A DNA stretch of 64,000 nucleotides, taken from assembly GCF_023055435.1 (NCBI RefSeq), contig NW_025964201.1, positions 2,542,001 to 2,606,000 of the forward strand, given 5' to 3'. Position numbers and translations under genes: made by a program. This document shows, piece by piece, positions 41,047 through 62,451 of the stretch (position 1 is the first letter of the stretch; each line of letters starts with the position of its first letter). This DNA comes from Haliotis rufescens (taxonomy: Eukaryota). Below the pieces are notes generated by a model that searched no databases, was not told the DNA's origin, and was given only the letters and a program-made list of their open reading frames with translations.

Positions 41047-42631
41047 TGTTCTGTTCTGTGGCCTCGAGACAGACCCTGTGTTTTATTTATGTCTATGTAT
41101 CATATATCTCTGTATCATATATGTCTCATGTATCATGTATCTCTGTATCTTCTATCTTCCTTTATTATACCTCAAAGTGAGATTGGCCAATCAGAGAGCA
41201 GAACAACTGACCCCACATGAGCCCTTATCCCGTCAGTAAAATCCAGGATGGTTGTTACTGACCTCATATGAGACCGTATACCGTCAGTTGCAGCCATCTT
41301 GGATTTTCCAACACCCACTTGTCACATGAAAATTTGAGAAATTCGTTATTCGACACTGTTAATTGTGATGTGCAAGGACATTAATCTTTTTTTAGACCAT
41401 GTTCGTGACGTTATTGATAAAGATTATAGCTAAAATTATCAACGAGGTTTGGCTTCTAAATTTTAAAGAGTAGTCTCCCTTTGACCCTCAACGTCCACAT
41501 TTGTAAGTGTCAAGTTCTCATTCTGACAACATGGGCGATATAAATACCAGAGTGTGTAAACTTTTCGCCATGATAAATTCGTTATGGTGTCTTAGTTGCC
41601 GTATTCGGTGTTATATTAGATTAGTAATATAGGTAACCTAATATGACACTGCATACGGCAACTAATGACGCCCTAACTAATAGTATGGAACCAATGCATA
41701 AACAGAGAAGACATTGACGTACTTACAATAATGTATTTATTAATGGACACGGATATGATAAGTAGTATATGCAAGCAAGGCAGATATAAACTGAGACACT
41801 TTACGCACAGAAATCAAATAAACTGTTCTGGGTATTTAGGCATGAGATAATCAAACACAGCACCGTCGACGTACGGGTTCGAATCTCATGCCTTGTGTTT
41901 AGAGATGAATTTCAGCCCCAAACACGTATTTCGAGTTAAAGTTGATTTAAAGTTGATTAAGGTTGAATGTCTATATATGAATGTGCAGGTTTCAACCGTA
42001 CGTTGATATACACAATATACAATGACCCAGATTAAGTGTTGCATCTTGTGTGCCTGGGTCAAGCTCCTGACACGTGATCAGCTCAGGCAGGGACAGTATG
42101 GGGATCAGTGAACCTATCGCGATACACACTTCCAGCAAACCCCACGGAAGTGAAAACTAGGTATTTGATACCTACACATGATTAATACATATATCAGCTG
42201 TATATGACAAATTACTTGGGCAGGTATCTTTTATACAGCACAACATTAGCGATTTAGCCTTTCGAATTTTCTCTTGAGACTAGGAATGAATGATTTGAAA
42301 CAAACGATATGCTTTGATGGTTCGCAACTGCTGATATACCAGCATGCACTTGATTATCAATGTATAGAGGTGGCTTGAAGTGGGGCCTGGTGAGGCCACA
42401 GTCATCGTGACGATATCCATTACAAAGTGAGGCTTCTCGAAGCTAGCAAAGTTCAAACCCGTCGGCAATGAAATCAGTGGTTGGAGGGTGTGCGAGGATG
42501 AAGTCAAGTTTGTTTGACCTATCCAAAGTTGCCACAGTTGGTCATCAATGCAATAAGACACTGAATCCATCCTCTATATCATTCACGTCATGGCTGCAGG
42601 TCGTGATGCTCATAGGGAACGGCTGGCTGGT

Positions 42632-45600
42632 TCAGCAAATACTGTTGTTCAACTCGAGGCGTGAAGATGTCTCATATATGTCATTATCAACCATATCAAC
42701 ACTGTCAGCAGCTGTCGGCGTGAGGTTTGGGTCCGTGTCCGCTGTCTGGACATTGTCGTACATGTTGTTGTTTGATCCCGTGTCATACAGGTCATTGTCA
42801 ACCATCTGTACTTTACTGTGTGGTTTGACCACAGACTGGTCAGGGTTTGATCCCGTGTCATACAGGTCATTGTCAACCATCTGTACTTTACTGTGTGGTT
42901 TGACCACAGACTGGGCAGGGTTTGATCCCGTGTCACACAGGTCATTGTCAACCATCTGTACTTTACTGTGTGGTTTGACCACAGACTGGGCAGGGTTTGA
43001 TCCCGTGTCATACAGGTCATTGTCAACCATCTGTACTTTACTGTGTGGTTTGACCACAGACTGGGCAGGGTTTGATCCCGTGTCATACAGGTCATTGTCA
43101 ACCATCTGTACTTTACTGTGTGGTTTGACCACAGACTGGGCAGGGTTTGATCCCGTGCCATACAGGTCATTGTCAACCATCTGTACTTTACTGTGTGGTT
43201 TGACCACAGACTGGACAGGGTTTAATCCCGTGTCATACAGGTCATTGTCAACCATCTGTACTTTACTGTGTGGTTTGACCACAGACTGGGCAGGGTTTGA
43301 TCCCGTGTCATACAGGTCATTGTCAACCATCTGTACTTTACTGTGTGGTTTGACCACAGACTGGGCAGGGTTTGATCCCGTGCCATACAGGTCATTGTCA
43401 ACCATCTGTACTTTACTGTGTGGTTTGACCACAGACTGGGCAGGGTTTGATCCCGTGTCATACAGGTCATTGTCAACCATGTCTACAACACTAAACCCCA
43501 TCAGATCAGATGGAGCATACGCTGCGTCAGGTGGGTTAGAAGGTCGACAGAAGCGTGACTGGCACAACTCAATCGTGTCTGCTGCGCCAGGCATGGTCTC
43601 CGAGTTTCCCAATGTTACCATCATCACACTGCCTATGTCGGATACGTGTTCCTGTTCGTCTGTGGACGGGATGTCGAGATTATTGTAACTGATATCGTCA
43701 CGGCCCGTCTTCATAGAATCTGGTTTGTCATCTCCGTGTGACGTGACAGCTTTGTGCCTGAAACAACATGACGTCATATTTCATACAGCGCAGGCCTTGA
43801 TCAACATCGTTCATCGTATTTGCCATAGCTTGGTACATTTTGGTAAAGATATAATTGATGTACATTTTTGTGTATAGAATTCGTAAATACATTTGTACTT
43901 CGACTAATATGAGTAGGCACGTCGTAGTGCATCTTCTGTACACACTTTAGATGGGAAACACTATCAATTAAGTTATGTATGTTTAGAATATCAATATGAG
44001 ATATGATTTTTTGAAATCCGAGGAACATGCTTGCATGGCTATAAGGATGATGGTGATGGTGATGACAACGACGGCAGCGACGAAGGCGGAGACGACGGTG
44101 ATGAGAGGTGGGGTGTTGTCTGCAAGGGAATATAGGTAGTTGCTCTTTGACTTTCACCTTGATAACGACATTACGATGAACAAGAAAACGAGATGTATTG
44201 ATACGAAGCGTGAAGAACGCGGCGTGTCAGCCTTAGGTGGGAAGAGTGTCGTAGGTTAGAGAAGTTCCCTACTGTGGGGCGTGGGGGGAGGGGCACGGGT
44301 GGCCCAGTCGTCTAATTTGCCGCGATTTGCTGTGCAGAGTTGCGTCCCTTGGGCACGCCAGAAACCTATGATCGTGGGTTTGAATCCCGGGTTCGCCCCG
44401 ATTGTGTTTCTAGGTTTGTCAGTACCATACCCGTGTGTCTGGGTTTCACGTGCATCATCTCGGGCTTTCCTCCCACATTAAGCTGACACGCCGTGATATG
44501 ACTGGAATACTGTTAAAAGCGGCGTTAAACCAACTCACTCACTCCCTACTTTGGTGTGTTCTACTTGCACTGAATCATAATCAGGATGAATGCAAACCAA
44601 CGACCAGTGGATCCGGAGGCGGATGAGTGACAACGTCTGTTCCCTGACGTGGGGTGAGGGGGGAATACAAGCCGTGCCCCCATCGTTATGTCTGTTCCCT
44701 GACGTGGGGTGAGGGGGGAATACAAGTGGTGCCCCCATCGTTATGTCTGTTCCCTGACGTGGGGTGAGGTGGGAATACAAGCCGTGCCCCCATCGTTATG
44801 TCTGCTCCCTGACGTGGGGTGAGGGTGGGAATACAAGTGGTGCCCCCATCGTTATGTCTGTTCCCTGACGTGGGGTGAGGGTGGAAATACAAGCCGTGCC
44901 CCCATCGTTATGTCTGTTCCCTGACGTGGGGTGAGGGTGGGAATACAAGTGGTGCCCCCATCGTTATGTCTGTTCCCTGACGTGGGGTGAGGGTGGGAAT
45001 ACAAGTGGTGCCCCCATCGTTATGTCTGTTCCCTGACGTGGGGTGAGGGTGGGAATACAAGTGGTGCCCCCATCGTTATGTTTGCTCCCTGACGTGGGGT
45101 GAGAGTGGGAATACAAGTGGTGCCCCCATCGTTATGTCTGCTACCTGACGTGGGGTGAGAGTGGGAATACAAGTGGTGCCCCCATCGTTATGTCTGTTCC
45201 CTGACGTGGGGTGAGGGGGGGGGGGGGGGGGATACAAGTGGTGCCCCCATCGTTATGTCTGTTCCCTGACGTGGGGTGAGGGTGGGAATACAAGTGGTGC
45301 CCCCATCGTTATGTCTGTTCCCTGACGTGGGGTGAGGGTGGGAATACAAGTGGTGCCCCCATCGTTATGTCTGTTCCCTGACGTGGGGTGAGGGTGGAAA
45401 TACAAGCCGTGCCCCCATCGTTATGTCTGTTCCCTGACGTGGGGTGAGGGTGGGAATACAAGTGGTGCCCCCATCGTTATGTCTGTTCCCTGACGTGGGG
45501 TGAGGGTGGGAATACAAGTGGTGCCCCCATCGTTATGTCTGTTCCCTGACGTGGGGTGAGGGTGGGAATACAAGTGGTGCCCCCATCGTCATGTCTGTTC

Positions 45601-48600
45601 CCTGACGTGGGGTGAGGGTGGAAATACAAGCCGTGCCCCCATCGTTATGTCTGTTCCCTGACGTGGGGTGAGGGTGGGAATACAAGTGGTGCCCCCATCG
45701 TTATGTCTGTTCCCTGACGTGGGGTGAGGATGGGAATACAAGTGGTGCCCCCATCGTTATGTCTGCTCCCTGACGTGGGGTGAGGGTGAGAATACAAGTG
45801 GTGCCCCCATCGTTATGTCTGTTCCCTGACGTGGGGTGAGGGTGGGAATACAAGTGGTGCCCCCATCGTTATATCTGCTCCCTGACGTGGGGTGAGGGTG
45901 GGAATACAGGTGGTGCCCCCATCGTTATGTCTGTTTCCTGACGTGGGGTGAGGGTGGGAATACAAGTGGTGCCCCCATCGTTATGTCTGCTCCCTGACGT
46001 GGGGTGAGGGTGAGAATACAAGTGGTGCCCCCATCGTTATGTCTGCTCCCTGACGTGGGGTGAGTGTGGGAATACAAGTGGTGCCCCCATCGTTATGTCT
46101 GCTCCCTTACGTGGGGTGAGGGTGAGAATACAAGTGGTGCCCCCATCGTTATGTCTGTTCCCTGACGTGGGGTGAGGGTGGGAATACAAGTGGTGCCCCC
46201 ATCGTTATGTCTGTTCCCTGACGTGGGGTGAGGGTGGGAATACAAGTGGTGCCCCCATCGTTATGTCTGCTCCCTGACGTGGGGTGAGGGTGGGAATTCA
46301 AGTGGTGCCCCCATCGTTATGTCTGCTCCCTGACGTGGGGTGAGGGTGGGAATTCAAGTGGTGCCCCCATCGTTATGTCTGCTACCTGACGTGGGGTGAG
46401 GGTAGAAATACAAGTATCGATGTGACCGTGAAGCCTGCTCCCTGACGTATGTCTGGCTTGGAATACAATTGATGCGCCTACCGTTATCCCTGTCCCCTGA
46501 CGTGGGATGTGGGGTATCTGGGGATGTCAGGCTGGAGTTCAGGGCCGTCCATGTTGATCCTGACGGAACGGTTGTACCCGTAGCTGTAGTCTCGGTGCTG
46601 TAGACATCAGTGGGTTCATGGTTTGTTGCAGAGTCAGTTTTCCCTGTCGATGCTGTCCCACTGTTTGCTGTTACTGATACTGTCTCGGTCGTTGTTGTAC
46701 CACTGTTTGTTGTTACTGATGCTGTTTCGGGCGATGTTGTCCTACTGTTTGCTGTTACTGATGTCGTCTCGGTTGTTGTTGTGCTGCTGTTTACCGTTGC
46801 TGATGGTGATGGTGATGCTGATGATGCCCCACTACTGCTGGATTCAGACGAGGAATCCGTGGATGTCGGTCCGTTTGATTGAGAAGATGGTGCCAGTGTT
46901 GACGTCGTTCCACCTTACAATTACACATTGGTAATAATTTGCCGACAGCTGCTTTATCACAGGTATTTTGATGGTGGAAAGTACTCGTGATTAACCCAAT
47001 GCTAGAGTCTCAGCTCATAATTCTTCGTCGGTCTAAAGGGAAACTGTTAAAATTGATTCGACTTACCTTATATCTACAAAACTAAGATGTACCCGAGACG
47101 GGCCATAATGCCCTCATTGTGTTCTACAGACACTGCACACATCGCCAAACTGAAACATTTCAGGCGAGTACATTGGCCTTCATTGCAGTAAATCATCGCC
47201 AGGGGGTCACATACACGTAGCTCGTCAGGGGATCTTATACATGTAGCTCACATCGTCAGGGTGTCTTATCAATGTAGCTCACATCGTCAGGGTGTCATAT
47301 CAATGTAGCTCACATCGTCAGGGGACATTATATACGTAGCTCACATCTTCAGGGGGTCATATATATGTAGCTCACATCTTCAGGGGTTCATATACATGTA
47401 GCTCACATCGTCAGGGGGTCATATACATGTAGCTCACATCGTCAGGGTGTTATATACATGTAGCTCACATCGTCAGGGGGTCATATACATGTAGCTCACA
47501 TCGTCAGGGTGTTATATACATGTAGCTCACATCGTCAGGGGGTCATATACATGTAGCTCACATCGTCAGGGTGTTATATACATGTAGCTCACATCGTCAG
47601 GGTGTCATATAAATGTAGCTCACATCGTCAGGGTGTTATATACATGTAGCTAACATCGTCAGGGGGTCATATACATGTAGCTCACATCGTCAGGGTGTCA
47701 TATACATGTAGCTCACATCGTCAGGGTGTCATATAAATGTAGCTCATATCATCAGGGGGCCATATACATGTAGCTCACATCGTCAGGGGGTCATATACAT
47801 GTAGCTCACATCGTCAGGGTGTTATATACATGTAGCTCACATCGTCAGGGGGTCATATACATGTAGCTCACATCGTCAGGGTGTCATATACATGTAGCTA
47901 ACATCGTCAGGGGGTCATATACATGTAGCTAACATCGTCAGGGTGTCATATACATGTAGCTAACATCGTCAGGGTGTCATATAAATATAGCTCATATCAT
48001 CAGGGGGCCATATACATGTAGCTCACATCGTCAGGGGGTCATATACATGTAGCTCACATCGTCAGGGTGTTATATACATGTAGCTCACATCGTCAGGGGG
48101 TCATATACATGTAGCTCACATCGTCAGGGTGTCATATACATGTAGCTAACATCGTCAGGGTGTCATATAAATGAAGCTCATATCATCAGGGGGCCATATA
48201 CATGTAGCTCACATCGTCAGGGGGTCATATACATGTAGCTCACATCGTCAGGGTGTTATATACATGTAGCTCACATCGTCAGGGGGTCATATACATGTAG
48301 CTCACATCGTCAGGGTGTCATATACATGTAGCTAACATCGTCAGGGTGCCAAATACATGTAGCTCACATCGTCAGGGGGTCATATACATGTAGCTCACAT
48401 CGTCAGGGGGTCATATACATGTAGCTCACATCGTCAGGGTGTTATATACATGTAGCTCACATCGTCAGGGTGTTATATACATGTAGCTCACATCGTCAGG
48501 GGGTCATATACATGTAGCTCACATCGTCAGGGTGTTATATACATGTAGCTCACATCGTCAGTGGGTCATATTTATATAGCTCACATCGTCAGGGTGTCAT

Positions 48601-51600
48601 ATACATGTAGCTCACATCGTCAGGGTGTCATATACATGTAGCTCACATAGTCAGGGTGTCAAATACATGTAGCTCACATCGTCAGGGGGTCATATACATG
48701 TAGCTCACATCGTCAGGGGGTCATATACATGTAGCTCACGTCGTCAGGGTGTCATATATATGTAGCTCACATCGTCAGGGGTCATATACATGTAGCTCAC
48801 ATCGTCAGAGCGTCATATACATGTAGCTCACATCGTCAGGGTGTCATATACATGTAGCTCACATCGTCAGGGGGTCATATACATGTAGCTCAGATCGTCA
48901 GTGGGTCATATTTATGTAGCTCACATCGTCAGGGTGTCAAATACATGTAGCTCACATCGTCAGGGGGTCATATACATGTAGCTCACATCGTCAGGGGGTC
49001 ATATACATGTAGCTCACATAGTCAGGGTGTCAAATACATGTAGCTCACATCGTCAGGGGTATATAAATGTAGCTCACATCGTCAGGGTGCCATATACATG
49101 TAGCTCATATCGTCAGGGGGTCATATACATGTAGCTCACATCGTCAGGGGGTCATATACATGTAGCTCAGATCGTCAGTGGGTCATATTTATGTAGCTCA
49201 CATCGTCAGGGTGTCAAATACATGTAGCTCACATCGTCAGGGGGTCATATACATGTAGCTCACATCGTCAGGGGGTCATATACATGTAGCTCACATAGTC
49301 AGGGTGTCAAATACATGTAGCTCACATCGTCAGGGGTATATAAATGTAGCTCACATCGTCAGGGTGCCATATACATGTAGCTCATATCGTCAGGGGGTCA
49401 TATACATGTAGCTCATATCGTCAGGGTGTCATATACATGTAGCTCACATCGTCAGGGGGTCATATACATGTAGCTCACATCGTCAGGGTGTCATATAAAT
49501 GTAGCTCACATCGTCAGGGTGTCATATACATGTAGCTCACATCGTCAGGGTGTCATATACATGTAGCTCACATCGTCAGGGGGTCATATACATGTAGCTC
49601 ACATCGTCAGGGGGTTATATACATGTAGCTCACATCGTCAGGGTGTCATATACATGTAGCTCATATCGTCAGGGTGTCATATACATGTAGCTCACATCGT
49701 CAGGGGGTCATATACATGTAGCTCACATCGTCAGAGCGTCATATACATGTAGCTCACATCGTCAGGGTGTCATATACATGTAGCTCACATCGTCAGGGGG
49801 TCATATACATGTAGTTCAGATCGGACAATAATACATCGTAAAGAAAATATCACAATATACTTAGGAACACGGGTATATAAGAGATAAAGGTTTCTGTACT
49901 CGTCACTAAGCTTAATGAGTTTAATTCAACATGTTATGATTTAATGTTCAAAATTTTAAGATTGGTAGATACAAACTTTTTGGAAGATATAAGTAGTTTC
50001 GATCGTTTAATGTAACTTTAAAGGCTTGTTCTGGTTTAGAAACTAACCGTAGAGTACTATTGTTTTACTTCTAAGTATACGTAACTATCCAACATATCCA
50101 ATAACACAATAGTGGAAGGATAATTTTAATTCCTAACCGTACTTTACTGTATATATCATTCATTCTCAGTGCAATTTATTCCTGATTTTGTTCAAGATTG
50201 GCCGCTGCTTGTGTAATATCTTCAGTAGTTTTGTCAGAATTTAAAAGATTACAGCTGTAGGAATGATTATTTGTTTCTTTTTCCTCATCACGTAGTCTAG
50301 TTTTTATTGTTTCGAAAATTTTCGTCAAGATATAAATATAAAATGTTCAATAAATTTATTCGGTATTGTATTATCATCTTTTGATTTGACTTTATTTAAA
50401 AACTTCTAAAAAGTCTTCAGGGGATATATTTTAATTTTGATGAAATATGTCTTGTAAGGTTTCTTTGTGTTGACGAATATATACTGAAGGCCAACGGAAA
50501 CTTTACCATTGTTTTAAATCCCTCTAGTTTTAAACCACAAAGATCGATGCATGAAGGAAATGTATTGAAAAGATCAAATCGGACGAGGAATGTCATCTGC
50601 GTAACGCTGAGCTGTCAAATGTTAACGGCGGCCAGCAGTGTTCTCTCCTGCCCACAAATTCCTCCGTCTTAGGACTAACAATGTTTACAGGTCTTTACAG
50701 TGTTGACACTACCCATAGTGTACAGTACATTCACCCTGTGCACTCAAAAGAACCCACTCGTCCGATGGCAGATGACCAGATGTTGGGAACATGAATACGT
50801 ACATACCCCCGAAACACAAGGGTCAAAACTTGTGGTGTCATCCTGGGCAAGTGATTTAGTTCAAATGTGCCTTTGGGAATTGGTACCCGATATGTAAATT
50901 GGATGTAAAAACCCTCAAGCGGCCGTAGGCAGTTTGGGTTGTATTCTCCCTTGGGAGTTGAGAATGATATCTGGAATACAAACGGATCAGCTGGTCGAGG
51001 AACAAAAAAAATATAAGAACCGGCTTTCAGCAGCGAAGACGACCATCTGCCAGTTACGTCGCTGCCAACGACATCTCGCTGTCCGGCCCATCTCAAACTA
51101 TGACGATGATGCTGCGCTGTCAATAATTGTTCTCAGCTGGGTCTGTAAGTCCTTACTCCTCGAGACCTGAGTCGACTGGCCACTGTCTGTCGATTTACCC
51201 TAAGACTTTCGTCGCTGATGACATCATTATCAGGAATCGATTCCGAAGATGCAAAGTACGCAAGTACCGGTCTTCATTGGGCGTAGTTACCCTAGGGTCT
51301 GCTTGTTCTTGGTCTGTCTGATGTCTGCCCGGTCTGTCTGTAACGTTTCATCAGGTTAGTTACAGCAACACGGGATCAACGAAAAGTTCTAGCAATGTGG
51401 GCATTGGTGGCTCCCATCTGTATCATACTCAGGTCCGCTCGCATTGTTCGGTTGTCAGTCGTGGCATCCCCTTGCGTTTTTCTTATCGGTGTGAGTGTCT
51501 CACATGCTGTCCGTATTATTTATATACCCTTGCACGTGTAGTTTCGGCTGCCCAAGTAGCACGTGTTTTTCACTTTATGGCATTTTTTACGAAAAATACA

Positions 51601-52914
51601 TGCCGTGGACGTGTATCAAATTCTGCACGGAGAAATGTTGTTTTTGGACGCAGTGTGAGTGTTTTTGAATTTTTGCAACTTTATTTTTAAAGCGTCATTT
51701 TTGGTCGTCAGTATCCTTATTATATACATACATCTTTTTATAAGCTTAGTTTCGTCCCGTGATAAGTGTACATTTGATGATGATTTGAATTATTAATTAT
51801 TCCTGTGAGAATCTCGCGTTTGGTATTTACAGATCAGCCATAAAAGATTTAGGTTCTAATTCAGATGTTACATGACTTTTATTCATTTCAAATACCTTGA
51901 TGACGTAATTGTCATACATTTTATAATCAGGGGCGTTAATTGTTCTGGCATGAAAATCTCCCATGTGTGTAACGAAGTCACGCTTAGTAAACATTAATTT
52001 TCTGATACAGACTTTTCAAATTCATAAAATGTAACCGCAGAGACATATTTAGATCATTCAGTGAGAATTGTATAAACCATTCCTGAATAAATGTCTTTAT
52101 CTAAATTAAAAGGGGTTTTGCATAGTTTAATCCACAATACAGTGTCACAAGATTCTTGTGTAAGTTCTTCACATTTTATATAGTAAGTGCTTCCTTACGC
52201 TCTCGGGGCCTGGACGTCAGCTGGCATTGCATACCACTCATATCAGTGCCGCTCTGTGATGACGTCACGGTTTCAAGAACATTGTATAAAAAAGTGTTAC
52301 ATTGTTCATATTTCTGCTCCGCTAATAGACTAACTGTTCAAATTGACTCCAGGAAACCCACATTTTCTAACTTTTCACAGTTAACTTTAACTTTAAGTGT
52401 TTCTCATTATAATAATTCAAGAAGCATTAGCTCCAAGATATGTTGTTAAATTTTAAACTATTGAAATCAGAAGAACGTCTTAATACTACAACGAATAACA
52501 GACCCGTGAAGATCCCGGGATAGAATAGGTCTTCTAAACCCATGCTTGCCGTAAAAGCGACTATGCTTGTCGTTAAAGGCGACTAACGGGATCGGGTGGT
52601 CAGGCTCGCTGACTTGGTTGATACATGTCATCGATCCCAATTGCGTGGATCGATGCTCATGCTGTCAATCACTGGATTGTCTGGTCAAGACTCGATTATT
52701 TACATACCGCAACTATATAGCTGGAATATTGCTGAGTGCGGCGTTAAACAAAACCAACCAACCAACAACGAATAACAGGATTATGTTTAGTATTCTATAT
52801 CCATGATAGCAAACAATCAAATGGTATATACTGAAAATGAAGAGATAAATATACACAAAACTCACCTTTTGTCGAAATCACCAAAAACGTAATGATGTTA
52901 AAAAACGTCAACAT
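42632..52914 (-). CDS. Gene 4: mucin-like single-pass membrane protein with tandem NxxY-repeat cytoplasmic tail (~563 aa; exons 52914-52866, 46913-46482, 44119-44035, 43757-42632)
   Basis: Signal-peptide exon MLTFFNIITFLVISTK (accATG, GTGAGT donor). 432-nt S/T-rich exon (GGTTSTLAPSSQSNGPTSTDSSSESSSS..TTETTSVT..). 85-nt TM exon PLITVVSAFVAAVVVITITIILIAM, the same length as the gene 3 TM exon. 1126-nt last exon with ISYNNL and 25-aa repeats. Total 1692 nt in frame, but this requires a GC donor at 44034-44033; additional exons between 46914 and 52865 cannot be excluded. Confidence 0.72.
42771..43480 (-). repeat. Coding 75-bp VNTR (9.5 units, MVDNDLYDTGSNPAQSVVKPHSKVQ) in the gene 4 tail
   Basis: Period 75 (42771, 42846, 42921...), no indels or stops, embedded in unique in-frame sequence. 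Confidence 0.92.
44288..44545 (+). mobile_element. SINE family D
   Basis: Homologous to the outer element at 40557-41046. Confidence 0.78.
44635..46470. repeat. 56-bp minisatellite (~32 units) derived from the gene 4 mucin-exon donor junction
   Basis: GTCTGTTCCCTGACGTGGGGTGAGGGTGGGAATACAAGTGGTGCCCCCATCGTTAT in tandem; aligns to 46460-46510. Confidence 0.93.
47195..49822. repeat. 31-bp minisatellite (~84 units)
   Basis: GTAGCTCACATCGTCAGGG(T/G)GTCATATACAT in tandem. Confidence 0.95.
50482..51713 (-). mobile_element. Degenerate Tc1-family element, same family as 20593-21640
   Basis: Left end CTGAAGGCCAACGGAAACTTTACCA matches the TIR at ~21613-21640; remnant LTAQHHRHSLRWA matches LTAQHRRLRLRWA; right end TTTTTGGTCGTCAGTA. 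Confidence 0.7.
52500..52767 (+). mobile_element. Family C repeat, full length
   Basis: GACCCGTGAAGATCCCGGGATAGAATAGGTCTTC head; GCTGGAATATTGCTGAGTGCGGCGTTAAAC + (AACC)n tail. Confidence 0.82.
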
Positions 52915-53299: not shown

Positions 53300-55812
53300 T
53301 AGTGAGGTTATAGGTAAAGCGTATGGTGTGTAGTTAAAGCTTGTAGTGTAGAGGTAAAGTTTTTAGCGTAGAGGTAAATGTTATAGGGAAGATAAAAGAT
53401 TATAGTGTAGAGGTAAAGCTTGTAGTGTAGAGGTAAAGATTATAGTGTAGAGGTAAAGCTTGTAGTGTAGAGGTAAAGCTTGTAGTGTAGAGGTAAAGCT
53501 TAAAGTGTAGAGGTAAAGCTTAAAGTGTAGAGGTAAAGATTATAGTGTAGAGGTAAAGCTTGTAGTGTAGAGGTAAAGATTATAGTGTAGAGGTTAAGAT
53601 TATAGTGTAGAGGTAAGGCTTGTAATGTAGATGTAAAGTTTATAGTTTTGAGGTTAAGCCTTTGGTGTTGGGGTAAAGCTTATAGTGTAGAGGTAAAGCT
53701 TGTAGTGTAGAGGTAAAGATTATAGTGTAGAGGTAAGCTTATAGTGTAGAGGTAAAGATTATAGTGTAGAGGTAAGCTTATAGTGTAGAGGTAAAGATTA
53801 TAGTGTAGAGTTAAGGCTTGTAGTGTAGAGGTAAGCTTATAGTGTAGAGGTAAAGATTAAAGTGTAGAGGTTAAGATTATAGTGTAGAGGTAAGGCTTGT
53901 AATGTAGATGTAAAGTTGATAGTTTTGAGGTTAAGCCTTTGGTGTTGGGGTAAAGCTTATAGTGTAGAGGTAAAGCTTGTAGTGTAGAGGTAAAGATTAT
54001 AGTGTAGAGGTAAGCTTATAGTGTAGAGGTAAAGATTATAGTGTAGAGGTAAAGATTATAGTGTAGAGGTAAAGATTATAGTGTAGAGGTAAAGCTTGTA
54101 GTGTAGAGGTAAAGATTATAGTGTAGAGGTTAAGATTATAGTGTAGAGGTAAGGCTTGTAATGTAGATGTAAGGTTTATAGTTTTGAGGTTAAGCCTTTG
54201 GTGTTGGGGTAAAGCTTATAGTGTAGAGGTAAAGCTTGTAGTGTAGAGGTAAAGATTATAGTGTAGAGGTAAGCTTATAGTGTAGAGGTAAAGGTTATAG
54301 TGTAGAGGTAAGCTTATAGTGTAGAGGTAAAGATTATAGTGTAGAGTTAAGGCTTGTAGTGTAGAGGTATAGTTTGTAGTGTAGAGGTAAAGCGTGTAGT
54401 GTAGAGGTAAAGGTTATAGTGTAGAGGTAAAGATTATAGTGTAGAGTTAAGGCTTGTAGTGTAGATGTTAAGCTTATAGTGTAGATGTAAAGTTTATAGT
54501 TTGGAGGTAAAACGTTTGGTGTTCGGGTAAATATTTTAGTGTAGAGGTAATGATTATAGTGTAGCGGTAAAGCTTGTAGTATAGATGTTAAGCTTATAGT
54601 GTAGATACAAAGCTAATAGTGAAGATGTTAAGCTTATAGTGTACATGTAAAGCTTTAAGAGCAGATTCAAGTTTATAGTGAAAATGTAAAGCTTATAGTG
54701 AAGATGTAAAGCTTATAGTGTAGATTAGAGCCTTTAGTGCAGATATAATGCTTATAGTGAAGATTTAAAGCTTATACTGCAGATTTTAAGCTTATAGTGT
54801 AGAGGTAAAGCTTACAGTGTAAAGGTAAAGCTTGTAGTGTAGATGTTAAGCTTATAGTGCAGATGTTAAGCTTATAGTGTAAATATAAAGCTTGTAGTGT
54901 AGAGGTAAAGCTTATAGTGCAGATGTTAAGCTGATAGTGTAGATGTAAAGCTTGTAGTGTAAATATAAAGCTTGTAGTGCAGATGTTAAGCTTAAAGTGT
55001 AGAGGTAAAGCTTATAGTGTAGAGGTAAGCTTGTAGTGTAGAGGTAAAGATTATAGTGTAGAGGTAAAGATTATAGTGTAGAGGTAAGGCTTGTAGTGTA
55101 GAGGCAAAGCTTAAAGTGTAGAGGTAAAGATTATAGTGTAGAGGTAAAGATTATAGTGTAGAGGTAAAGCTTGTAGTGTAGAGGTAAAGATTATAGTGTA
55201 GAGGTAAAGATTATAGTGTAGAGGTAAAGCTTGTAGTGTAGAGGTAAAGATTATAGTGTAGAGGTTAAGATTATAGTGTAGAGGTAAGGCTTGTAATGTA
55301 GATGTAAAGTTTATAGTTTGGAGGTGAAGCGTTTGGTGTTGGGGTAAAGCTTATAGTGTAGAGGTAAAGCTTGTAGTGTAGAGGTAAAGCTTAAAGTGTA
55401 GAGGTAAAGATTATAGTGTAGAGGTAAAGATTATAGTGTAGAGGTAAAGCTTGTAGTGTAGAGGTAAAGATTATAGTGTAGAGGTAAAGATTATAGTGTA
55501 GAGGTAAAGCTTGTAGTGTAGAGGTAAAGATTATAGTGTAGAGGTTAAGATTATAGTGTAGAGGTAAGGCTTGTAATGTAGATGTAAAGTTTATAGTTTT
55601 GAGGTTAAGCCTTTGGTGTTGGGGTAAAGCTTATAGTGTAGAGGTAAAGCTTGTAGTGTAGAGGTAAAGATTATAGTGTAGAGGTAAGCTTATAGTGTAG
55701 AGGTAAAGATTATAGTGTAGAGGTAAGCTTATAGTGTAGAGGTAAAGATTATAGTGTAGAGTTAAGGCTTGTAGTGTAGAGGTAAGCTTATAGTGTAGAG
55801 GTAAAGATTAAA
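53300..55812. repeat. 19-20-bp minisatellite (~125 units) with higher-order blocks
   Basis: TAGTGTAGAGGTAAAG(A/C)TT(A/G); the variant block AATGTAGATGTAAAG..TTTGGTGTTGGGG recurs five times. Confidence 0.95.
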
Positions 55813-56288
55813 GTCAGGAACAACACTGACAGCTGAGTGACGGTAGTCATTGCCCGGTACCAGCACACTACCGAGAAGATCTCCTTACTGTCAGGAACAA
55901 CACAGACAGCTGAGTGACGGTTGTCATTCCCCGGTACCAGCACACACCCGAGAAGATCTCCCTACTGTCAGGAACAACACAGACAGCTGAGTGACGGTAG
56001 TCATTTCCCGGTACCAGCACAATACCGAGAAGATCTCTTTATTGTCAGGAACAACACTGACAGCTGAGTGACGGTAGTCATTGCCGGTACCAGCACACTA
56101 CCGAGAAGATATCCTTACTGTCAGGGACAACACTGACAGCTGAGTGACGGTAGTCATTCCCCGGTACGAGCACACTACCGAGAAGATCTCCTTACTGTCA
56201 GGGACAACACTGACAGCTGAGTGACGGTAGTCATTGCCCGGTACCAGCACACTACCGAGAAGATCTCCTTACTGTCAGGAACAACACA
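55813..56288. repeat. 77-bp tandem repeat (6 units)
   Basis: GTCAGGAACAACACTGACAGCTGAGTGACGGTAGTCATTGCCCGGTACCAGCACACTACCGAGAAGATCTCCTTACT. Confidence 0.93.
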
Positions 56289-57319: not shown

Positions 57320-60300
57320 ACATAAAGACTATCACAAGTAAGCTTTGACACATAATGACCAGTAGAAGTAAGCCCTGACACACACTGACCGGTACAAGTA
57401 AGCCCTGACACAGCAAGACTGGTAGAAGTAAGCCCTGACACAGCATGACCGTTACAAGTAAGCCCTGAGACAACATGACCGGTACAAGTAAGCCCTGACA
57501 CAGCATGACCGGCAGATGTAAGCCCTAACACATACTGACCGGTAGAAGTAAGCCCTGACACAGCAAGACTGGTAGAAGTAAGCCCTGACACGGAATGACT
57601 GGTACAAGTAAGCCCTGACACAGCATGACCGTTACAAGTAAGCCCTGAGACAACATGACCGGTACAAGTAAGCCCTGACACAGCATGACCGGTAGAAGTA
57701 CGCCCTGACACAACATGACCGGTAGAAGTAGGCCCTGACACAACATGACCGGTACAAGTAAGCCCTGACACAACATGACCGGTAGAAGTACGCCCTGACA
57801 CAGCATGACCGGTACAAGTGAGCCCTGACACAACATGACCGGTACAAGTAAGCCCTGACACAAACTGACCGGTAGAAGTAAGCCCTGACACAACATGACC
57901 GGTAGAAGTAAGCCCTGACACAGCATGACCGGTACAAGTAAGCCCTGACACAAACTGACCGGTAGAAGTAAGCCCTGACACAACATGACCGGTAGAAGTA
58001 AGCCCTGACACAGCATGACCGGTACAAGTGAGCCCTGACACAACATGACCGGTACAAGTAAGCCCTGACACAGCATGACCGGTAGAAGTAAGCCCTGACA
58101 CAGCATGACCGGTACAAGTGAGCCCTGACACAACATGACCGGTAGAAGTAAGCCCTGACACAGCAGGACTGGTAGGAGTAAGCCCTGACACAGCATGACT
58201 GGTATAAGTAAGCCCTGACACAGCATGACCGGTACAAGTAAGCCCTGACACACCATGGCCGGTAAAAGCAAACCCTGACACAGCATGACTGGTACAAGTA
58301 AGCCCTGACACAGCAGGACTGGTACAAGTAAGCCCTGACACAGCAGGACTGGTAGAAGTAAGCCCTGACACAGCATGACTGGTATAAGTAAGCCCTAATA
58401 CAACATGACCGGTACAAGTAAGCCCTGACACAAACTGACCGGTACAAGTAAGCCCTGACACAAACTGACCGGTACAAGTAAGCCCTGACACAAACTGACC
58501 GGTAGAAGTAAGCCCTAATACAACATGACCGGTACAAGTAAGCCCTGACACTGCATGACCGGTACAAGTAAGCCCTGACACAAACTGACCGGTAGAAGTA
58601 AGCCCTGACACAAACTGACCGGTAGAAGTAAGCCCTGACACAAACTGACCGGAACAAGTAAGCCCTGACACGGAATGACTGGTACAAGTAAGCCCTGACA
58701 CACCATGGCCGGTAAAAGCAAGCCCTGACACAACATGACTGGTACAAGTAAGCCCTAATACAACATAACCGGTACAAGTAAGCCCTGACACTGCATGACC
58801 GGTACAAGTAAGCCCTGACACAACATGACCGGTAGAAGTAAGCCCTGATATACACTGAGTGGTACAAGTAAGCCCTGACACAAACTGACCGGTAGAAGTA
58901 CGCCCTGATACAACATGACCCGTAGAGGTATGCCCTGACACATACTGATCGGCAGAAGTAAGCCCTGACACATACTGACCGGTAGTAATAAGCCCTGACA
59001 CAACATGACCGGTACAAGTAAGCCCTGTCACACACTGACCGGTACAAGTAAGCCCTGACACATACTGAGTGGTAGAAGTAAGCCCTGACACATACTGACC
59101 GGTAGTAATAAGCCCTGACACAACATGACTGGTACAAGTAAGCCCTGTCACACACTGACCGGTACAAGTAAGCCCTGACACAGCATGACTGGTAGAAGTA
59201 AGCCCTGACACATACTGATCGGTAGAAGTAGGCCCTGACACATACTGACCGGTAGTAATAAGCCCTGACTCAACATGATCGGTAAAAGCAAGCCCTGACA
59301 CACACTAACCGGTACAAGTAAGCCCTGACACAAATTGACCGGTAGAAGTAAGCCCTGACACACCATGGCCGGTAAAAGCAAGCCCTGACACAACATGACC
59401 GGTAGAAGTAAGCCCTGACACAAACTGACCGGTAGAAGTAAGCCCTGACACAACATGACCGGCACAAGTAAGCCCTGACACAACATGACCGGTAGAAGTA
59501 AGCCCTGACACAAACTGACCGGAACAAGTAAGCCCTGACACAACATGACCGGTAGAAGTACGCCCTGACACAACATGACTGGTACAAGTAAGCCCTAATA
59601 CAACATGACCGGTACAAGTAAACCCTGACACAAACTGACCGGTAGAAGTACGCCCTGACACAACATGACCGGTAGAAGTAGGCCCTGATAAAACATGACC
59701 GGTACAAGTACGCCCTGACACAAACTGACCGTTAGAAGTACTCCCTGACACATACTGACCGGCGGAAGAAAGCCCTGACACAGCATGACTGGTAGAAGTA
59801 AGCCCTGACACACACTAACCAGTTCAAGTAAGCCCTGGCAGAGCATGACTGGTAGAAGTTAGACCTGACACATACAAACTTGCTGAAGTAAGCCCTGACA
59901 CAGCATGACTGGTAGAAGTAAGCCCTGACACATACTGACCGGTAGAAGTAAGCCCGGACACAACATGACTAGTAGAAGTACGCCTTGACACAACATGACC
60001 GGTACAAGTAAGCCCTGACACAACATCACTGGTAGAAGTATGCCCTGACACAGCATGACCGGTAGAAGTACGCCCTGACACAACATGACCGGTAGAAGTA
60101 AGCCCGGACACAACATGACCGGTAGAAGTAAGCCCTGACACACTAACCGGTACAAGTAAGCACTGACACAACATGACCGTTTCAAGTAAGCCCTGGCACA
60201 TACTGACCGGTAGAAGTAAGCCCTGACACAACATGACTAGTAGAAGTACGCCTTGACACAACATGACCGGTAGAAGAACGCCCTGACACAACATGACTGG

Positions 60301-61903
60301 TAGAAGTATGCCCTGACACAGCATGACCGGTAGAAGTACGCCCCGACACAACATGACCGGTAGAAGTACGCCCTGACACAACATGACCGGTAGAAGTACG
60401 CCCTCACACAGCATGACCGGTACAAGTAAGCCCTGACACACCATGAATGGTATAAGTAAGCCCTGACACAACATGACCGGCAGATGTAAGCCCTGACACA
60501 GCATGACCGGTAGACATACGCCCTGACACAACATGACCGGTAGAAGTAAGCCCTGACACAACATGACCGGTAGAAGTACGCCCTGACACAACATGACCGG
60601 TAGAAGTACGCCCTGACACAGCATGACCGGTACAAGTAAGCCCTGACACAGCATGACCGGCAGATGTAAGCCCTGACACAGCATGACCGGTAGACATACG
60701 CCCTGACACAACATGACCGGTAGAAGTACGCCCTGACACAACATGACTGGTATAAGTAAGCCCTGACACAGCACGACCGGCAGATGTAAGCCCTGACACA
60801 GCATGACCGGTAGACTTACGCCCTGACACAGCATGACCGGCAGATGTAAGCCCTGACACAGCATGACCGGTACAAGTAAGCCCTGACACAACATGACCGG
60901 TAGAAGTACGCCCTGACACAACATGACCGGTAGAAATACGCCCTGACACAGCATGACCGGTAGGAGTAAGCCCTGACACAACATGACCGGTAGAAGTACG
61001 CCCTGACACAACATGACCGGTAGAAGTATGCCCTGACACAATATGACCGCCAGAAGTACGCCCTGACACAACATGACTGGTATAAGTAAGCCCTGACACA
61101 GCCTGACCGGCAGATGTAAGCTATGACAGCATGACCGGTAGAAGTATGCCCTGACACAACATGACCGGTAGAAGTATGCCCTGACACAGCATGACCGATA
61201 GAAGTAAGCCCTGACACAGCATGACCGGCAGATGTAAGCCCTGACACAGCATGACCGTTAGACGTACGCCCTGACACAACATGACCGGTAGAAGAGCGCC
61301 CTGACACAACATGACGGGTAGTAATAAGCCCTGACACAGCACGACCGGCAGATGTAAGCCCTGACACAGCATGACCGGCAGATGTAAGCCCTGACACAGC
61401 ATGACCGGTACAGGTAAGCCCTGACACAACATGACCGGTAGAAGTACGCCCTGACACAACATGACCGGTAGAAGTACGCCCTGACACAACATGACCGGTA
61501 GAAGTAGGCCCTGACACAACATGACCGGTACAAGTAAGCCCTGACACAACATGACCGGTAGAAGTACGCCCTGACACAACATGACCGGTAGAAGTACGCC
61601 CTGACACAACATGACCGGTACAAGTAAGCCCTGACACAACATGACCGGCAGATGTAAGCCCTGACACAGCATGACCGGTAGAAGTATGCCCTGACACAGC
61701 ATGACAAGTAGAAGTATGGCCTGACACAACATGACCGGTAGAAGTACGCCCTGACACACACTTACCGGTAGAAGTACGCCCTGACACAACATGACTGGTA
61801 GAAGTATGCCCTAACACAACATGACCGGTAGAAGTACGCCCTGAAACATACTGACCGGTAGAAGTACGCCCTGAAACAACATGACCGGTAGAAGTAAGCT
61901 CTG
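57320..61903. repeat. 30-bp minisatellite (~150 units)
   Basis: GTAAGCCCTGACACAACATGACCGGTAGAA in tandem; 2-nt deletions near 60140 and 61125. Confidence 0.96.
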
Positions 61904-62451
61904 AGAAAAGGAAATATTAAGAATGTGTGTCAGCCTGGACAAATGTTAATAGATTTATACATTTCCTCTTGACCAGTTACACGAACGTAATCAATAGTGC
62001 ATGCACATGTGACAGTCACGCCATGACGAGCTGTTCCACTTGCCGGTGTGGTGTATAAGGATGTCCTGGTGTTAATATGACATTCAGGGAGATGTTGAAT
62101 GGTAATGTCAATATGCGAAGCGTTTATAAATGTTTCCTCTGTGTAACAGGAAGAAAGTATAAACATTTAACATTCAGTGTGATAACGTTGTGCTGGTGTA
62201 AGTCATCAGGGTGAGTGAGTCACTTGAGTTCACCATCGTTCTGAACAGTATTTCCATTTTATGCAGTCGTTTCAGCGGTTTTAGAGATTTACCACATTGG
62301 GTGAAACCCAGGGTTATGTTATCATAATCAGGGCAAATCTGGCGTTGGAAGCCTTGATCATACCGGCTCCTGGAAGACTGTAGGACTCAACTCTGCACAG
62401 AAAAAAACGGTGACGTTGACGCCAAATCCATGTCCTCGGCTATACATGGGT

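Follow-up and report, generated by a model that had tools for sequence, protein, structure and literature searches.

The window, a 64,000-nucleotide stretch of the Haliotis rufescens genome, carries on its minus strand a gene for a small mucin-like type I membrane protein, with a signal peptide, a serine/threonine-rich (S/T-rich) stalk of ~144 aa, one transmembrane (TM) helix and four exons (Table 1). The signal peptide MLTFFNIITFLVISTK, the 144-aa S/T-rich exon and the TM segment PPLITVVSAFVAAVVVITITIILIAM join in one frame with phases 1/1/1, the signal peptide and TM helix being judged by eye. This bears out the original prediction of a mucin-type membrane gene, since the signal peptide, stalk and TM exons follow one another in matching phases. 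Pfam returned sub-threshold noise only, with no SEA or other Pfam domain. A candidate 5' exon ending ATATAAG/gtaagt near 47077 was discarded as coding sequence, every frame through its donor having a stop or no ATG. The last exon holds a 75-bp minisatellite within a long open frame, which had been predicted to be the cytoplasmic tail of the receptor.

Table 1. Features of the mucin-like gene. Positions are counted from the first letter of the window; a slash marks an exon-intron boundary, with intron letters in lower case.
Feature	Positions	Strand	Basis
Exon 1, coding part: ATG at 52914, signal-peptide-like MLTFFNIITFLVISTK, donor AAAG/gtgagt after 52866, phase 1	52866..52914	-	Sequence reading; phase fits next exon
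S/T-rich 'mucin' stalk exon, 432 nt, ~144 aa, no Met; acceptor aag/GT, donor AACG/gtaggc, phase 1; internal 42/84-bp repeat	46482..46913	-	Sequence and X10 depth
Intronic minisatellite, 56-bp x 31.7	44635..46415	.	TRF
TM exon, (D)NTPPLITVVSAFVAAVVVITITIILIAMQA; acceptor cag/AC; candidate donors CAT/gttcct (end 44027, phase 1) or CAA/gcatgt (end 44031, phase 0)	44027..44119	-	Sequence and contig depth
Intron, 34% GC, partly retained, depth 0-25% of exon depth	43758..44026	-	Contig depth
Last exon, acceptor tttcag/G at 43757, AATAAA at 41741-41736; lower end approximate	41725..43757	-	Contigs and poly(A) signal
Second AG (aaag/CT), exon start 43749	43749..43752	-	Phase arithmetic; absent from contigs
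374-codon 'tail' frame: 92-aa non-repeat head (ISYNNL), array, 45-aa end (NNMYDNV and diverged motif copy SVDMVDNDIYETS); stop 42632-42634	42635..43756	-	ORF and motif reading
Tandem repeat, 75-bp (25-aa) unit MVDNDLYDTGSNPAQSVVKPHSKVQ, 9.5 copies	42770..43480	-	TRF and translation

Transcription of the gene and its repeat-rich surroundings

We compared the contigs of 4 of the 24 listed runs (X1, X2, X9 and X10, from four studies with two organism labels) with the window over 42300-44630. No run was recorded as RNA; the run type was taken to be RNA from the behaviour of depth, and the 14 best small runs were guessed to be RNA. Depth was high over 42300-42845 and 43470-43781, fell to between zero and about one quarter in 43782-44015 (zero in X9), was zero in 44172-44249 and returned to exon level on the covered part of the TM exon. 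In X2 and X9 the contigs stop exactly at 43757, and a contig of 1084 letters from X10, at a depth of 16.8, matches 43451-43757 and then departs from the genome line. Contig depth in X10 over 44076-44120 is also 16.8, the same as on the last-exon contig, with neighbouring intron bins at zero or far lower. The X10 bin fits 27 covered bases (44094-44120), implying that G is the last base of whichever exon is spliced ahead of the TM exon, which is true of the mucin exon. At the other end, contigs come close to the poly(A) signal, extending to about 41744-41826. The last exon is thus transcribed, with its acceptor at 43757, and shares a transcript with the TM exon; the earlier expectation that the repeat exon is transcribed and spliced at 43757 agrees with the contig ends and the jump in the X10 contig.

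Much of the DNA around these exons is repetitive. There are 44 TRF rows in the 64-kb window of this 1.33-Gb genome, and very long minisatellites take up much of intron 1 and of the sequence upstream of the gene, at 47194-49823 (31 bp x 85, in intron 1), 53312-55814 (20 bp x 126) and 57336-61904 (30 bp x 152). Intron 2 contains the 56-bp array. The last ~50 bases of the mucin exon together with its donor (46440-46530) are a diverged copy of the 56-bp intronic unit, with 42 invariant columns, and the true donor, ATAACG/GTAGG, stands where the unit has ATAACGATGGG; the exon end and the array are therefore of common origin. Intron 2 also holds, at 44250-44560, a very abundant interspersed repeat whose summed contig depth reaches several hundred thousand, in all four runs. 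It has many rearranged joints and loose ends with a GGTTCGAATCCC-like box, and ARAGORN found no tRNA in it. Short periodic runs (GTC/GTT, ATCACC) make up the DNA of the TM helix at 44038-44075, which was handled as repeat in read mapping.

Coding-like character and relatives of the repeat-bearing frame

The minus-strand ORF at 42632..43777 has 381 aa, or 374 codons counted from acceptor 43757, and is open from the first base of the last exon. Its motifs run in the order ISYNNL, nine NDLY and one NDLC, NNMYDNV and a last NDIY, and here the description given in the original prediction was exact, ORF and TRF being in agreement. The copies of the 75-bp unit match at 98%, with zero indels. The differences between units all fall at codon position 2 (6/6) and are all non-synonymous (6/6); one is the Y>C change that leaves a unit without its tyrosine (NDLC). 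NPxY and NxxY are PTB- or FERM-binding motifs, and the ITIM is defined as [SIVL]xYxx[ILV]. The tail frame has 11 NxxY sites, with proline absent from the motif, and ISYNNL fits the ITIM pattern. An ITIM, PTB/FERM docking and a valency set by allele length are proposals drawn from the motif pattern.

The array is not peculiar to the assembly. In three runs we found a collapsed repeat contig of 99-105 letters at ~6-8x the depth of the flanking contigs (827 against 105-148 in X1, 65.6 against 8.6-9.9 in X2 and 70.9 against 8.3-10.9 in X9), from which it follows that a multi-copy array is present in other individuals too and that the repeat is no assembly artefact, the outcome that would have undone the prediction. 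Because short-read contigs collapse the array, they inform on its presence rather than on the copy number of each individual.

Does the tail frame have the properties of coding sequence? Openness inside the repeat says little, because three of the six frames are open there, including a 406-aa ORF on the plus strand, and because a 63-bp minisatellite elsewhere in the genome (L006, G000:C512:1846836-1850465) has ORFs of 395-438 aa in three frames. L006 illustrates the ease with which this genome yields long repeat ORFs. The non-repeat flanks are more informative. Their 92 + 45 = 137 codons contain zero stops in the tail frame, as compared with 8 and 7 (first flank) and 1 and 6 (second flank) in the two remaining minus frames. 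Among 20,000 shuffles, such openness arose at a frequency of 0.0009 in the given frame and of 0.0029 in any of the three frames. Using a codon table derived from six long open frames that lie at HSP70 loci in this genome, we obtained log-odds of +32.9 and +21.2 bits for the two flanks in the tail frame and strongly negative values in the other frames; among the controls, the TM exon scored +26.0 in its own frame, and 3'UTR and intron at most +5.7. This codon score is a weak instrument, because the S/T frame of the mucin exon went unrecognised by it. On these features of its sequence, the tail frame has the look of coding sequence. The antisense ORF of 406 aa (42468-43688, plus strand), in which ~169 non-repeat codons are open, probably arises as a side effect of sense-frame composition.

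Comparison of the ORF flanks between the window and the four runs gave a different picture. There were 14 differences, 3 synonymous and 11 non-synonymous, none of which created a stop, and no indels occurred in the 493 flank bases across the four runs. The density of SNPs in the flanks (14 in 493 nt) is like that of the 3'UTR (11 in 332 nt). By our own binomial estimate the data fit no constraint, and strong constraint (omega <=0.3) is excluded at about p = 0.02; the same estimate would be compatible with a loosely constrained, disordered tail.

These observations bear on whether the frame is coding at all. A minisatellite lying in a 3'UTR could be open by chance, as many are in this genome, and the number of tandem repeats in the window, the three open frames within the array (with L006 behaving likewise) and the neutral look of the variation are what such a minisatellite would give. 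Against it stand the openness of the flanks (P ~0.001-0.003), a codon signature specific to the tail frame and a motif held in common with P0009, the one relative described below, and we consider the purely non-coding reading very unlikely.

Word searches, run with the complete tail, its leading 102 aa or alignment A1, found no protein with the tail and recovered only P0009. A search of 1.84 billion representatives gave 26 matches at E up to 0.001 and none at 1e-30. Twenty-five of these matched the repeat part only, at 22-37% identity, and the remaining one was again P0009; the nine repeat-part matches that were inspected proved to be RCC1-like, bacterial or minisatellite-derived repeat proteins in which the motif was absent. 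A protein-level search of this genome with the tail gave 46 matches, which beyond the locus itself were all repeat against repeat, many with stops. The best open match among them, L006, was rejected as a paralogue, being a 63-bp minisatellite open in three frames. Within the window, tblastn with the tail flanks, the TM exon and the signal peptide found no paralogue, and the neighbouring lectin genes are without the tail. The absence of the tail from protein collections agrees with an annotation that leaves it untranslated.

P0009 is a 150-aa protein from one Logan contig of 1923 nt, with 33-45% identity over 87-146 aa. In one open frame it contains four diverged units of the VDMVDNELYES type, with P/A-rich linkers of 28-30 aa between them; three of the four units retain N and Y, and the fourth has S. 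Its start, MVTSIGVVYFRIYAPIKKVRSAK, resembles the end of a TM helix followed by a basic stop-transfer stretch (KKVRSAK). In this genome P0009 matches the tail locus only, and its best match is the old, diverged motif copy SVDMVDNDIYETS near the C-terminus. The two proteins also differ: the units of P0009 are diverged and so old, whereas those of abalone are 98-100% identical, the head before the first motif is shorter in P0009, and ISYNNL has no counterpart there. These likenesses argue for inheritance of the motif-bearing tail as a coding feature and for its recent expansion as the source of the near-identical 25-aa units. By descent, the 374-codon frame of the last exon would be a cytoplasmic tail built on the acidic motif VDMVDN[DE]LY[DE][ST], which a young 75-bp minisatellite may have copied to about ten.

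Splice phase and possible products of the last exon

In the tail frame, 43757 is the third base of a codon, so that a phase-2 junction, supplying two bases from upstream, is required. Apart from the GT after 44027, in phase 1, all GT and GC dinucleotides of the TM exon begin codons, and none is in phase 2. Near the end of the TM exon that GT is the only one, and one base remains with it; with the GC at 44030 no base remains. Acceptor 43757 calls for phase 2; as the canonical donors provide 1 or 0, the tail should fall out of frame behind the TM helix, and under these donors the repeat is not in the frame read on from the TM exon. The GT donor takes the TM frame on for 15 codons of the last exon, to a TGA at 43713-43711; the GC donor brings it to a stop after 9. 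We infer this frame break from splice rules and a probable choice of donor rather than from a junction: on the donor side, 44038-44075 was skipped as repeat and the row for the joint was dropped. The prediction that the repeat exon is joined to the TM exon thus stands for the RNA, on contig depth and contig ends, while an in-frame join is unsupported, the phase being 1 or 0 in place of the 2 that is needed.

Several ways of restoring the frame were considered and set aside. A junction after ...GCATG (TT-AG) would be in frame and was ruled out, as the next letter of the X10 contig mismatches 43758. Skipping the TM exon does not help, since the mucin exon is also in phase 1 and the tail stays off frame. 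U12-type or AT-AG splicing of an exon ending ...CAAGC was not adopted because the donor misfits the U12 consensus. The sole canonical in-frame join pairs the GT donor at 44027 with an acceptor at 43749, 8 nt downstream of 43757. Use of this acceptor was not seen in the contigs of X2, X9 and X10, which run unbroken through 43749 to 43757, and contigs lose rare isoforms.

The reading that we place first, and judge as likely right as wrong, gives the gene a short-tailed mucin-like protein as its main product, whose stop precedes the repeat; the long tail would be either a minor splice form using acceptor 43749 or recently uncoupled. In the contigs the last exon of the main mRNA begins at 43757, where both canonical TM donors would throw the tail out of register; the membrane protein would then end within the last exon, after 9 codons with the GC donor or 15 with the GT donor, leaving the repeat in the 3' untranslated part.

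Alternatively, the long tail could be translated in frame behind the TM helix, by the GT donor with 43749 or by an unobserved junction, giving a receptor with about ten acidic NxxY phosphotyrosine docking sites. The open, codon-biased flanks and a frame open from the acceptor onwards are in keeping with such a receptor, as is P0009, in which four copies of the motif come after a hydrophobic segment and KKVRSAK, arranged like a tail that follows a TM helix, and which matches this locus alone in the genome. The join it calls for is canonical GT-AG as well as in frame, and the in-frame start that results, ..S-VTSHG, resembles the start of P0009, MVTSIG. These points are offset by contigs of X2, X9 and X10 that pass from 43749 to 43757 without a branch, by the lack of a canonical phase-2 donor, by variation that looks neutral and by protein collections without an annotated protein bearing the tail; docking and phosphorylation, moreover, are read from the motif pattern. 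We regard this second reading, with the receptor made in appreciable amounts, as possible but doubtful.

The tail frame might also be translated independently of the membrane protein. The GT junction creates an AUG (..AT/G CAC..) that opens a 375-codon frame, which would encode a soluble tyrosine-motif protein and no receptor tail. The junction AUG follows directly from the sequence. With the same donor, the TGA of the TM frame also overlaps an ATG of the tail frame (ATGA, 43714-43711), an overlap that speaks for this route but may be a coincidence. Alternate-frame translation of a mucin mRNA has a reported precedent in MUC1-ARF (PMC5074479). Yet several upstream AUGs and a 200-codon upstream ORF would, by the established rules of eukaryotic initiation, make scanning or reinitiation unlikely, and this route depends on the weaker-looking GT donor. 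We judge it very unlikely.

One further proposal can be framed, which is unlikely as it stands: two acceptors 8 nt apart may switch the receptor between an almost tail-less form and a form with about ten acidic DNDLY motifs multiplied by the minisatellite, splice choice and allele length together setting the number of docking sites, and the motif may define a small, undescribed mollusc tail family that includes P0009.

Comparison with known systems

If the long tail is made, the locus would be a rare instance, for animals, of a minisatellite that has multiplied the intracellular tyrosine docking motifs of a receptor. If it is not made, the locus is a caution that a long repeat ORF that looks coding may be out of frame even when it directly follows a TM exon, and it may show a receptor tail just after its uncoupling. 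That repeat number can set valency is an idea already exemplified by the nearest published concepts, CagA and, in the case of SH3 motifs, DRD4.

In its signal peptide, its S/T-rich repetitive stalk and its single TM helix, the abalone protein is like MUC1-type mucins and sialomucins, and it would share with them several tail tyrosines if the tail is in frame. MUC1 itself differs in that its VNTR is extracellular and its tail short and non-repetitive, and the abalone gene has neither a SEA domain nor any sequence relation to it.

A further parallel is the 48-bp VNTR in exon 3 of DRD4, which, like the array as proposed here, lies in coding sequence and raises the number of copies of a short docking motif on the cytoplasmic face of a membrane protein. 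The DRD4 repeat lies in a loop of a GPCR, carries proline-rich motifs of the SH3 type and varies within populations as a polymorphism. Its being in frame is beyond doubt. The suggestion in the original prediction that allele length could set signalling valency has a counterpart in the EPIYA-C repeats of Helicobacter pylori CagA, a bacterial effector that is injected, has another motif and shares no homology with the abalone protein; there, as reported, the number of repeated tyrosine motifs sets the valency of SH2-protein binding (PMC4623810).
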